From: Basidiobolus meristosporus CBS 931.73
Lineage: Eukaryota; Fungi; Basidiobolomycota
Assembly (NCBI GenBank): GCA_002104905.1
Contig: MCFE01000169.1
Location: 81,047-145,046, forward strand
Direction of reading: 5' to 3'
Length of the DNA: 64,000 bases
Positions 26,640 to 52,278 of this stretch are shown one piece after another; position 1 is the first letter of the stretch, and every line of letters begins with the position of its first letter. The notes below the pieces were generated by a model. It saw only the letters and a program-made list of their open reading frames with translations, ran no database searches and was not told where the DNA came from. The translations under genes and the position numbers were made by a program.

Positions 26640-26830
26640 AGGATACCAATGGGGCAAGTGCCTTCATCTCTTCCTCAAAGCCTGAGAGATGTACATAGGT
26701 CCCAGCCAACCAAGGATGAAGACGCTTGTGCCAGAAAGGGCAGGGCAAATATTGGTGGTGACAACGTCACAAGTGCTATGGTGGTTGTTGGAAATATGGA
26801 GGATTTGTATGGAATTATAGGTGTGTTTTG
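26640..26830 (+). pseudogene. Gly/Arg/Tyr-rich (GRY) precursor relic, internally deleted
   Basis: ACCAATGGGGCAAGTGCCTTCATCTC and GATGAAGACGCTTGTGCC align to the pro region. The end decodes as a degenerate RGKYW...YGG. Confidence 0.6.
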
Positions 26831-27916
26831 AATTACTAACCTACCACGTTGTACTGTTAAGCTTACTTGCAATATTGCCATCCTCTACAGCTTTGAAGAG
26901 ATGCTCAATAAGTGTCATTTATGCATACTCTTGCTGCTTGCCCACTCGTATTTGTTTACGTGAGCAATATTCGACAATTTCACATAAGAATCTCTCTGCT
27001 ATGGCTAGCTTAGTCGCTTATTGCTGTGGAAGACAGAAGGAAAAGTGGTTGTATGCTAGCTGCGGTGTTTGCCTCCAAAATACACAACATCATTCGACTG
27101 AAACCCACCAATTCCGAGAAGTTTCATGGATGGGATTTCAATCAACCTCCATCTTGGCCGAAAACAGTGCTAAGCTTTATTCGAGCAATCAACAGTCACT
27201 AGTTACGTCCAGTCGAGCTGGACATTAATTACATACTAATTTGAGCTGACTCGCAGGCTAAGAAAGAGTGAATGGCTATGGGTATCTACTGATGCTGTCT
27301 GCTCATAGCGGATAAGACTTTACTAGTGCCATGGTGAGCAAAGATCAAGTGATATAGTTGCGCTTTCTTTACAACCATAAATGTTAGGCCGGATTGAATG
27401 CATGCATAGTGTGATGAAGGGCCATGGTAGTTGTTAGAAATCTCTTTGCTCGACTTGATTTAATATAGGAATCTCTTTGCTTGACTTGCATTGTGATTTG
27501 TTTTCATGAGCGAGTGTTTGTGCAGTGGTTGTTTCCGGAATGTACTACATCATTTGACTGCATATCAATTAGCCATGTATATAAGCTAATGTCGAGCATT
27601 CAATATTCTCAATTTACTGTCAACTCACCGTTCTGTTCACAACAGCAAGCCCCTCTCCAACAGAACGGTGACTCAGCTCCCACGCCCCAATTGGCTCAAG
27701 CTATATAAATAAAATTCAGCATCATCATTACTTGGCATGTAACTTGAACGGGATTGCCTCATATGGTTGTTGGCATATTATCAATACTAAACAATGGTTG
27801 AAACAATGGTTGAAATCCAGTTTTAATTGAACTTACAAAGGGCCATTGTTCGAGCCGTCATCTGATCATATTGGAGTGAAGTTTTCGCTATAAAGGGACA
27901 ATGGCTTGACACTGTT

Positions 27917-28183
27917 ATGCAAACCATGGTGCAAGCCCAGGACCGTATCTATAGAGAAAGAGCCATGCTGGTTCTTCGCGTGGTGTGCGAGGTATTCTCA
28001 GCAACACATGGGCTGCAGGAGCTAACGATGGAGAATGGTGAAGTAGTAGCAAAGTTTAAAGGGAAGCCAGCTATGCGTAGGAATATAGACTCACCTCTGG
28101 AGACTTCGCCTGCTTGTGAAGCCTTGACAGCCATTGTGTTTGAACCTAAAGCTAGCACATCCCAAGCTGGCTTGGGCAAATGA
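27917..28183 (+). other. Coding-like segment of unknown function, paralogous to about 41050-41280
   Basis: THGLQELTMENGEVVAKFKGKPAMRRNIDSPLETSPACEAL vs THGLQKLMLENGKVSIKFKGKPVMCRNLNKPLETSPACEAL, with several synonymous differences. Strand not fully resolved. Confidence 0.4.
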
Positions 28184-28489
28184 ATAAACATCCTGTTGCA
28201 GAAGGAACAGCGTTGTGTTTATTAGAATTCACAAAGTGTTATAAAGGTGCGTGCCCAGCGAGGTATAAGGCATTCTCGGGTAGCTTAATCTGTAATACGT
28301 ATAGATAGTGTGTACACATAGTATGTATAGATAGATGCAATTTAAGTATCACAATATAGCGATTAAATAGTATGACGACTCAGCCACAATTGATTCAACA
28401 TCATAGTTGGGCTGTACTTGAATCCTATTGATAAGAAACAACAGTCAAAATTCTGATTTAATTCGTGAACTTACCACAACATAATGGTC

Positions 28490-28575
28490 ACTTTAGCTGC
28501 GACTTGTGGTGTTATATACTGGTTACATACTTAGTAGTGCACCAGAGGATTGTGCTGAAGTTGGCTGATGAATAA
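28490..28575 (-). pseudogene. Fragment of the 118-aa secreted protein gene (exon 1 end and intron donor)
   Basis: TTACATACTTAGTAGTGCACCAGAGGATTGTGCTGAAGTTG matches the 32685-32725 region. Confidence 0.7.
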
Positions 28576-50200: not shown

Positions 50201-51519
50201 GGAATGACCAAGATATTATAGATGCATTAGCTGAAAGCACTCAGGTGCTTGCACTGCTAAGTTGCTTAGAAATGAGTCAGTATAATGCTAACTGCAAGCT
50301 TTTTATAGAACAATTGGTACTGAACATTCCTGATAGTCATTAGCTGTATTTATCAGTGATTAAGTATAAGTTATGGCCTGGGGAGCTAAACTGTGCCTTT
50401 GTTTGCTATTTTGACATCACTGATCATAGTAGCCTATGTGGTCTGTGAGTTCCACTCATGCCAACCAAGTACTGTAAGGTGCCTTATCAGGACAAAGTAC
50501 CCCTGCTTAGACTTTATAATAGCAATTCAATGACTAATCATACAGCACTATTGGAACAAACTAAAAAGTACCCCTGTAGTTTGAATTTATTACAGCTCAT
50601 TGAGATGAATCTGCTGCCATCAATTCTCCATTAGAATCATTAGTTTGTAGGGCTCAATGACTGATAATTTTACATGCATGTGCAGTAGTCGCAAGCTAAA
50701 TGCACACTGTGTCACAGTATCAGTGTATAGTTGTCTGTTTTCTTAGCAAGAAATTCCCTATGGAAGCAATAATGAAAGCCATTTATTTTCCTTCTCATTT
50801 TCCGCTACCAAGCCTACTATGATAGTGCCTATAGCTTACTGGGCTCAGAATTTAATAAACATAGATACCCTGTGCTCTCTGGTATGCAAGACCAGTTGAT
50901 GTTATGATTCTTTTCCTGTAGTTGGGATTGGCAAAATGAAGGATACAGAAAATATTTGCAGCATTGATAAGATGCTGGATGTAGTAAGTATATTCCAATC
51001 ATTCTTGCAGGCCAGCTGACATTGCTGACAGGAATAGGGAAGGCACAATCTCTATTGTATATTATGTAATTTGGTAAAGCTTGTAACAAACACAAAGGCA
51101 ATCTGAATGCCAAGTTATTACTCATATATCAACTAGCAATGTTTAGTGTTTGCTTACTATTCACACTGACATTGAGCCATTACTATGCTTCACAAAATCT
51201 ATGAGCAATATATAAATGGTAAGCTTTTTGATTGTCAAGTGAGATTACCAATCTAAATACACACATCTTAAATAGTGACAGTGATATATATTTGAAGTTG
51301 CTTGTAAGTAGCAGCTGCATACAAATTGGGGCAGAGCAATCAGCTTGAAAAATGCTTCCTAAACACACTCCCTCACTTCTCTCCTAATGGCCAAATACGC
51401 TGTTGGATATCCAGCACTAATGTGGCAAGCTCTTGCATCTTCATTTGCTGTCTGACCAACTAGACATTGCCAAGTGGGGTGATTTGGACATCTTGGGTGC
51501 TCCTGACTTAGACTCCAAA

Positions 51520-51604
51520 GAGGACAAGTTGTGGGTAAGATACAAGGGAGTTACAGCAGGTATGAGGAATATGGGGCAATGGACGTTATGGCCGGTGCTG
51601 CTAG
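51520..51604 (+). pseudogene. Possible GRY junction/core fragment
   Basis: CCAAAGAGGACAAGTTGTGGGTAAGATAC...TATGGGGCAATGGACGTTATGGCCGGTGCTGCTAG. Confidence 0.45.
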
Positions 51605-51859
51605 TTGTAAAAGCATTAACAACCATAGCTGTTCATCTTCAGTTCATTCAGTGTAAAGGTACTAAGCCACTAATTATGAATAGTGCATTTACATTTAGAA
51701 TGCTTATCTTGTTATAAATAGACATTATCAATTTGAGGAAATTACTATCCAAGGTTTGAGACAATTTCAACTCCTCAAAAATGTGCATTGTGAAAAGTGC
51801 TTCTGCTTCTCCTGTGTATTTACAGTCCAGACTGCACTTGATTCAGGGTTCAAGATACA

Positions 51860-52278
51860 CAAACTGTTCATTCCTTCCTGCACTCTGCTAATAGCCGCCT
51901 GTTACATTGAGATTGCCACCCAAAAGACAGGCATTAATGTAGACAGTGCCTTCATTTCCATCAGAAACGGTCCAGAAGTTCTAATCTAGCAATGAGGAGG
52001 AAGCTTAAGCCATTCTTGATGTCAGCGGATGAATTTAATAAATCACTGACAAAACAAGATACTGTCAAGAAGCTGCTACCAATGTCAATAACGAAGAAAA
52101 TGTGCGCGATCACGACACCAACCCAGAAGAGGCCGAGATTTGGGGAAGGCATGGTGATTACCGCAGGAAGTGGGGTTGATTTGAATGTTATGGTGGCTGC
52201 TCAGGATATGGACGCCCTGAGGGTACGGACCCTATGGTGATTACGGAAGCTACGATGGTCATGGTGGTTACGCTTAGC
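51860..52278 (+). pseudogene. Divergent GRY paralog, inactivated
   Basis: NEENVRDHDTNPEEAEIWGRHGDYRRKWG* followed by YGG/YGR/YGDYGSYDGHGGY remnants. Confidence 0.7.

Follow-up and report, generated by a model that had tools for sequence, protein, structure and literature searches.

The question raised by this locus is what kind of protein is encoded by a tandem family of short genes in a 64,000-nt stretch of the genome of the fungus Basidiobolus meristosporus CBS 931.73 (the whole stretch is called the window below, and coordinates refer to it unless another locus is named). An earlier note on the same DNA had proposed that the genes encode secreted precursors, with an acidic pro region followed by a core made largely of Gly, Arg, Tyr and Trp, and that the core is either a fungal antimicrobial or competition peptide or an adhesive. 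The comparisons described here support the first part, in that the family is, as judged from its sequences, a real and selected group of small secreted proteins restricted to Basidiobolus. The functional part is less secure, as the core does not diversify and has no processing site at its boundary. The reading that we place first, tentatively and by analogy with known precursors, is that these are charge-neutralised secreted proproteins in which the cationic C-terminal tail may act as an antimicrobial or competition peptide.

The window holds a single intact copy, at 33924..34373 on the plus strand. It is an uninterrupted, intronless open reading frame (ORF) of subtype A, and its 149-aa product (P0025) is identical letter for letter to an annotated protein of the same strain (assembly GCA_002104905.1). 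The signal peptide (aa 1-19, 33924-33980), assigned by inspection of the residues, has a lysine at position 3, a hydrophobic stretch, and Ala-Phe-Gly ahead of Ser20. Translation and composition define the remainder: an acidic N-terminal domain (aa 20-100, 33981-34223) and a Gly/Arg/Tyr/Trp tail (aa 101-149, 34224-34370, with the stop codon next). The acidic domain has a net charge of -11, and its final 19 residues alone have a net charge of -9. Following Leu101, tail residues 102-149 are 21 Gly, 10 Arg, 10 Tyr, 4 Trp, 2 Cys and 1 Asp, with a net charge of +9, three occurrences of YGGYG, and CDWGC at the C-terminus. The signal, the acidic pro region, the 48-aa core of six residue types and the opposed charges of -9 and +9 are thus all as the earlier note had described them. 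A TATA box, TATATAAAG, lies about 40 nt 5' of the ATG (33877..33885, plus strand); it is invariant in 4/4 aligned copies, and the alignment places the TATATAAAG box about 40 nt 5' of the ATG at other family genes also. Within the front half, the motif TNVASASIS..[DN]PQSG is invariant. AlphaFold2, run with a 15-sequence family alignment, predicts with low confidence (mean predicted local distance difference test score 47) that residues 52-85 form a helix and that the tail is disordered. The two alternative frames of the tail are likewise open.

The genome of B. meristosporus contains at least 40 gene models of the family, spread over at least 12 scaffolds. These fall into two subtypes, often with genes of the two subtypes adjacent: subtype A of 149 aa (28 sequences, one 90% cluster) and subtype B of 139 aa (11 sequences). 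The front halves of A and B are only about 46% identical, yet they carry the same tail. Nei-Gojobori counts were made for ten intact genes. Between the subtypes, the tail has 12.1 synonymous and 2.6 non-synonymous differences (proportion of synonymous differences pS 0.34; ratio of non-synonymous to synonymous rates, dN/dS, 0.05), compared with 42 and 72 in the front half (dN/dS 0.23). Within subtype A, the corresponding dN/dS values are 0.03 and 0.20, and overall those for the tail range from 0.03 to 0.06. The clear conclusion is that no part of the gene is as constrained at protein level as the tail, which is under strong purifying selection. Because the synonymous differences are many, its conservation reflects selection and not merely recent gene conversion. 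The tail is not drifting low-complexity sequence.

These counts bear directly on the simplest alternative, that the ORFs are non-functional relics of unequal crossing-over close to ribosomal DNA (rDNA) and a satellite, and that the tail is open by chance. There are reasons to consider it: of roughly 13 copies in the window, 12 are broken, a satellite (9779-18140) and rDNA (from 54900) flank the array, and the tail is open in all three frames. However, dN/dS, counted over many synonymous differences, is 0.03-0.06 for the tail and about 0.2 for the front half, which is not what such relics would display; 11/20 near-full copies are intact, the signal peptide and TATA box are conserved, and the family is conserved across species at 38% identity. 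We therefore regard this explanation as highly improbable.

The cross-species comparison shows that the two halves of the protein have different histories. An exhaustive profile search of 1.8 billion representatives, made with the front half only, gave Basidiobolus proteins and, beyond these, only weak bacterial DUF5122 matches. Three front-half paralogues (P0055, P0057 and P0058) are present in Basidiobolus ranarum AG-B5 (GCA_040143965.1; bioRxiv 10.1101/2025.03.31.646025), of which P0058 aligns with the window protein over 102 residues at 38% identity (E 3e-20). All three stop exactly where the tail of B. meristosporus starts, and no protein with a Gly/Arg/Tyr/Trp tail was found in the annotated B. 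ranarum proteome. Past the stop of P0058, the same frame encodes a short Tyr/Gly/His/Cys stretch. The location of P0058 also has a parallel in the window: the most diverged window copy, at 51855-52271, is about 1.5 kb upstream of a class-3-lipase-like gene, and P0058 is placed likewise, the N-termini of the two lipase-like proteins being 32% identical (E 3e-6). Contigs from another organism's sequencing run encode a diverged front half and a variant tail with the same last residues. These comparisons suggest that the front half is an old, genus-wide functional domain, that a C-terminal Tyr/Gly/Cys peptide is probably likewise old but changeable, and that the six-letter Gly/Arg/Tyr/Trp tail would be derived, having been amplified in the B. 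meristosporus lineage. A front half retained in B. ranarum, with the tail absent there and varied elsewhere, matches an arrangement typical of such precursors, in which the carrier is conserved and the payload varies.

The same comparison raises a second alternative, namely that the protein is never cleaved and has two domains. The N-terminal domain would then be the ancestral functional unit, and the tail a lineage-specific tether to anionic surfaces, for example the wall of the fungus itself, bacterial envelopes, mucus or host cells. The three B. ranarum paralogues, each consisting of the N-terminal domain only with the same stop, are under purifying selection (dN/dS 0.17-0.28), from which it follows that the front half has a role of its own. 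The front half's invariant motif and predicted helix also fit, as does a boundary with no cleavage site. Against this, the tail in B. meristosporus is far more constrained than the N-terminal domain, and front halves of only 46% identity bear the same tail, which points to the tail as the key element; moreover, the near-exact cancellation of charge resembles neutralisation of a payload. On balance we think a permanent two-domain protein unlikely, although worth keeping in mind.

The cancellation of charge is seen in every member checked and in both subtypes, with a front region of net -7 to -11 and a tail of net +7 to +9, so that in eight members the whole secreted form has a net charge of only -4 to +2. 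The suggestion that an anionic propiece neutralises a cationic core is therefore well founded as far as the charges go, but the front half is a conserved domain, found without a tail in B. ranarum, and not simply a propiece. The suggestion of a processing site in the pro region fared less well. The intact copy does have a KR, at residues 46-47, but this is in the middle of the acidic region and away from the tail boundary, and it is not conserved: 149-aa proteins have KR or KK at this position, 139-aa proteins TQ or TR. Similarly, RRR within the A tail is RWG in the B tail. The boundary itself is conserved as EE[AT]x-LWGR, which fits no known protease motif. With the KR unconserved and no dibasic site before the tail, release of a free tail is an assumption.

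None of the searches for known families places these proteins elsewhere. A search of 5.8 billion proteins gave matches at E<=0.001 to B. meristosporus proteins only, with no nematode homologue. The Pfam family GRP (glycine-rich protein, PF07172) scored 12.9 bits against a cut-off of 30 (E 0.18), and the protein is not a member of it; NCBIfam gave no match at E<=10 for P0025, P0032 or P0003. Searches of the Protein Data Bank by sequence and of the ESM Atlas with the whole protein, the tail and the front half gave nothing above chance, and the Atlas contained no nematode cluster. The comparison of the pro region with characterised GRP families thus came out negative in Pfam and NCBIfam, and in the profile search, whose matches were Basidiobolus proteins and weak DUF5122 ones. 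It is worth adding that a stretch of the front half (P0003 residues 41-73; GK.IT.F.S..DE.ARAI...) is 47% identical (15/32, BLASTP) to bacterial DUF5122 "delta-60" beta-propeller repeats. The DUF5122 proteins (P0051, P0052 and P0056) reach a profile E of 3e-7, which is summed over several repeats, and the family has no Pfam DUF5122 match. This likeness may be due to chance or to an old fragment, and it is not used as support here. We found no paper linking Basidiobolus to a Gly/Arg/Tyr/Trp family.

A third alternative is that the genes encode the precursor of a modified peptide: a peptide made by ribosomes and modified after translation (RiPP), a Kex2-processed repeat protein, or an "rSAM-associated Gly-rich repeat protein". 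This has some attraction, since B. meristosporus tops the surveyed fungi in Kex2-processed repeat proteins (PMC7329392), P0032 and P0036 bear the UniRef name "RSAM-associated Gly-rich repeat protein", and one B. ranarum homologue has a sulfotransferase gene 1.5 kb away. The UniRef name is unsupported, however, because NCBIfam has no match even at E<=10. Nor does the protein have the form of a Kex2-processed repeat protein: there are no repeated cores separated by KR, but a single tail, with one KR/KK in 149-aa proteins and none in 139-aa ones. No gene for a modifying enzyme was seen in the arrays, and neither the DUF3328/UstYa nor the tyrosinase Pfam families, which would indicate a dikaritin-type RiPP, occur among the called genes of four further B. 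meristosporus loci (L001-L004) or the ORFs of the window. The explanation is accordingly very improbable. The sulfotransferase itself is a Sulfotransfer_3 (PF13469) gene close to P0055 (L005 265-1679, minus strand); no sulfotransferase match was found in the window or in L001-L004, and it was rejected as a partner of the family since it has no counterpart at the B. meristosporus loci.

Returning to the charge-neutralised proprotein, the mechanism that we envisage is as follows. The acidic domain would keep the Arg/Tyr-rich tail soluble and harmless inside the secretory pathway. Outside the cell, the tail would be exposed, or released by a protease other than kexin, and could then serve the fungus, as a cationic, glycine-rich peptide, to kill or compete with the bacteria of its gut and dung habitat; the high copy number would provide dosage. 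One report (PMC10964425) describes Basidiobolus as living amid dense gut bacteria. We place the antimicrobial reading first because of this habitat, the basic YGGYG make-up shared with the nematode NLP/caenacin peptides, and the combination of a conserved carrier with a payload that varies between species.

Several observations count against it. No dibasic or other recognisable cleavage site is present at the tail boundary in either subtype, and the KR within the acidic region is not conserved. The tail is nearly invariant within the species, whereas many antimicrobial-peptide clusters diversify. The tail-less paralogues of B. ranarum are themselves under purifying selection, and a composition of Arg, Tyr, Trp and Gly is equally suited to adhesion or condensation. 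In addition, as only one of about 13 copies in the window is intact and the array borders rDNA and a satellite, instability of the region may account for part of the amplification.

The near-invariance and the composition lead to the alternative that is most similar to the adhesive of the earlier proposal. Here the tail would be an extracellular material, with Arg, Tyr and Trp as "stickers" and Gly as "spacer", which condenses or cross-links when the acidic domain is removed or the pH changes. Oxidation of tyrosine or the two terminal cysteines would be the routes to the material, and the product would be an adhesive, for instance the glue on the capilliconidial tip, or else a component of the wall or zygospore; mussel mfp-3 or Gly/Tyr-rich structural proteins would then have an analogue in a fungus. 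Much about the tail suits this. Its composition is extreme, the 48 residues including 10 Arg, 10 Tyr and 4 Trp; a near-invariant tail in which only 3- or 6-aa repeat indels occur is a better fit to a material than to an arms-race peptide; a high gene dosage suits a bulk product; the two terminal cysteines could link chains; and adhesive capilliconidia are formed by Basidiobolaceae. The model protein mfp-3 is itself of about 6 kDa, cationic, rich in Tyr/DOPA (3,4-dihydroxyphenylalanine) and Trp-containing (PMC12721214). On the other side, no tyrosinase, peroxidase or laccase gene was found in the arrays examined, where the neighbours have no Pfam domain, and no sequence relation to adhesive or structural families was found. 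B. ranarum makes the same spore forms, and its annotated proteome has no protein with the tail. We consider such a material possible but rather unlikely. A more specific form, in which the protein is a self-neutralised sticker-spacer precursor whose tail forms an extracellular coacervate, glue or cross-linked layer after secretion (as a capilliconidial adhesive, a zygospore wall or a cationic hyphal sheath), is by analogy conceivable and similarly doubtful. If correct, it would mean that a fungal counterpart of mfp-3 was invented independently in one genus and is carried in dozens of copies beside rDNA.

The remaining copies in the window illustrate how these genes are maintained and lost. The intact 149-aa protein and the 139-aa subtype were used as tblastn queries, a clear locus being one at E<=1e-4. 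This gave 13 family loci, all on the plus strand, between 29229 and 52271, with E down to 1e-79, and three weaker fragments at 26618, 33496 and 44950. The figure of about 16 copies or fragments over 25.6 kb on the plus strand, given previously, is therefore a fair one. The common boundary EE[AS]x[LI]WGR noted previously recurs, as E[ED][AS..]x[LI]WGR, in nine window copies. To call the copy at 33924 "the intact gene" is right for the window but not for the genome: across five loci (the window and L001-L004), 20 near-full copies were compared, and 11 are intact.

About 12 of the 13 window loci are broken by frameshifts or stops or are fragments, and all of the following are on the plus strand. 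Two subtype-A copies, at 29229..29665 and 31116..31552, have the same 13-nt deletion, which is at gene nt 114 and gives a frameshift at codon 38, with a first stop at codon 41 in the copy at 29229; in both, the tail protein is unchanged. They differ from each other mainly at synonymous sites, with a front-half dN/dS of 0.13 on the 3' side of the deletion, and with no non-synonymous and four synonymous changes in the tail. They may be recent breakages spread through short-tract gene conversion. A third subtype-A copy, at 37426..37818, has deletions of 17, 10 and 30 nt and a first stop at codon 31, and its lesions recur in L003 at 13113-13502. At 42521..42942 there is a diverged subtype-B-like copy with a frameshift and a stop, and the most diverged copy (51855..52271) has several frameshifts and stops, and a tail that also contains His, Asp, Ser, Pro, Phe and Glu. 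The other loci are fragments: a 3' piece with a stop inside it, covering the last part of the acidic region and the tail (35924..36112), which contains the RWRGKYW reported previously in the fourth copy (35969); the boundary and first 17 tail residues of a 139-aa-subtype gene (36994..37071); a decayed, frameshifted fragment (39816..40051); a weak acidic-region fragment (42107..42193); an N-terminal fragment only (43292..43465); and a boundary and tail fragment (45149..45226). The fragment at 26618..26732 is N-terminal and very weak (E 0.004), and lies at the left edge of the region given in the earlier note.

Of the 20 near-full copies, two have the 13-nt deletion and five have a 17-nt deletion at nt 83. 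Both deletions are recurrent, being seen on several scaffolds (L001, L003 and L004), and both lie where the front half is most conserved; 3' of them the frame remains open and dN/dS is low. Gene models from the Joint Genome Institute (JGI) bridge the deletions by a 26-nt "intron" or by an internal ATG that drops the signal peptide. A 26-nt GT..AG mini-intron that would rescue the copies with the 13-nt deletion was considered and rejected as too short to be credible, and the 26-nt GT..AG "intron" in gene model P0035 is treated as a modelling artefact. About a dozen further gene models enter the other reading frame of the tail via upstream frameshifts. The alternative acidic tail frame of many JGI models (P0002, P0006-P0013) was likewise set aside, being explained by these frameshifts together with a repeat composition that keeps all frames open.

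Locus L001 is about 94% identical to window positions 26516-35572. A copy that is intact in one block can be broken at the equivalent place of another, and it follows that whole arrays have been duplicated or are homeologous, with single copies decaying independently. There has been some exchange of sequence, as P0044 has a B front half with an A-type tail, and the tail tolerates repeat-unit indels of 3 or 6 residues. The arrays thus turn over by duplication and frameshift decay, and probably also by gene conversion. Read depth over the gene is about 10x that of its flanks in DNA-like sequencing runs, a value that is summed over paralogues and is not a copy number.

A second gene has been amplified together with the family. 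The intact partner, at 32353..32779 on the minus strand, consists of two exons separated by one intron; its product, of 118 aa, is a secreted protein with two cysteines and no Pfam domain. Each array block has one full partner, and a truncated partner copy lies on the minus strand about 130 bp 3' of each family gene. Such a remnant is found at 29794..29988 (minus strand, about 130 bp downstream of a family copy), and similar ones, also on the minus strand, at 31680-31874, 34502-34768, 36251-36451, 37997-38086 and 43489-43863. The partner is 76% identical to B. ranarum P0061 over its 88-aa second exon and 62% over the whole protein (BLASTP, P0061/P0060), and is therefore better conserved across species than the Gly-rich family (38%). 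Two other genes were noted in or near the arrays: a 214-aa ORF inside the window array (38787-39431, minus strand) with no Pfam match, and a called gene of 241 aa in L003 (14407-15167, minus strand), just past the L003 counterpart of the 37426 copy.

The array as a whole is flanked by satellite and rDNA. The satellite (9779-18140) has a 34-bp unit in about 246 copies, with a strong GC skew; diverged inverted relatives are present at 1-5100 of the window, and the same satellite opens the family-bearing scaffold locus L002. On the other side are a class-3-lipase-like gene (53781-54894), a full-length large-subunit (LSU) rRNA gene starting directly after it (54900-58454, plus strand), a 5S rRNA gene (59335-59453, minus strand) and a small-subunit (SSU) rRNA gene cut by the window end (62221-64000, plus strand). 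There is no SSU or 5.8S upstream of the LSU at 54900, and its start directly after the lipase-like gene means that either the rDNA array ends here or the assembly was joined here. No telomere repeats were found in the window or in L001-L004.

This is among the most amplified secreted-protein families of a gut-dwelling fungus that is able to infect people and animals, and it is annotated only as "hypothetical". It is a clear case in which sister species differ by the gain or loss of a low-complexity payload on a conserved carrier domain. If antimicrobial, the tail would mean that the YGGYG solution of nematodes arose independently in a fungus, on a simple scaffold of 48 residues. If instead it forms an adhesive or a condensate, it would provide a new natural model of charge-gated extracellular phase separation by Arg and Tyr. 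As far as is known, fungal host-defence peptides are defensin-like or of the AFP/PAF type. To our knowledge, no ribosomal family of Gly/Tyr/Arg-rich cationic peptides is known from fungi, and a literature search was likewise without one.

How, then, does the family compare with known systems? The nematode NLP and caenacin peptides are basic Gly/aromatic peptides with YGGYG or YGGWG, and belong to large, defence-linked gene families (111 genes; PMC6780910). NLP-29, NLP-31 and the caenacins (CNC) resemble the Basidiobolus family in their secretory form and in a basic Gly/aromatic tail (here +9, with three YGGYG). In contrast, the Basidiobolus proteins have an 81-aa acidic front domain in place of short spacers and no dibasic site at the boundary, and their tail has far more Arg and Trp, ends in CDWGC, is conserved and not diversified, and is fungal. 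NLP and caenacin genes, too, occur in tandem clusters. The resemblance to mfp-3, which was compared by composition only, lies in a small (about 6 kDa), cationic, secreted protein rich in Gly, Tyr, Arg and Trp, with many variants (PMC12721214). However, mfp-3 has no acidic front domain, depends on DOPA and comes from an animal gland. It depends on hydroxyarginine as well. The ending RRGKYW, cited for it in the earlier note, was not found in the literature search. The caution expressed at the outset, that the likeness to both could be convergent, holds good, as it is compositional and the search for nematode homologues was negative.

Two further systems are informative. As with the anionic propieces of alpha-defensin type, the charge of the front region offsets that of the C-terminal peptide, but here the front region is a conserved domain that also stands alone in B. 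ranarum. Plant GRPs (PF07172) share a signal peptide followed by a Gly/Tyr-rich region, and some of their classes have C-terminal cysteines; they lack the acidic domain and the Arg/Trp content. Because the homology and model tests failed, the family is a member of neither the NLP/caenacin, the GRP nor the rSAM-type groups. By analogy, it is best described as a charge-neutralised cationic precursor in the manner of known ones, with a composition like that of NLP/caenacin and mfp-3.

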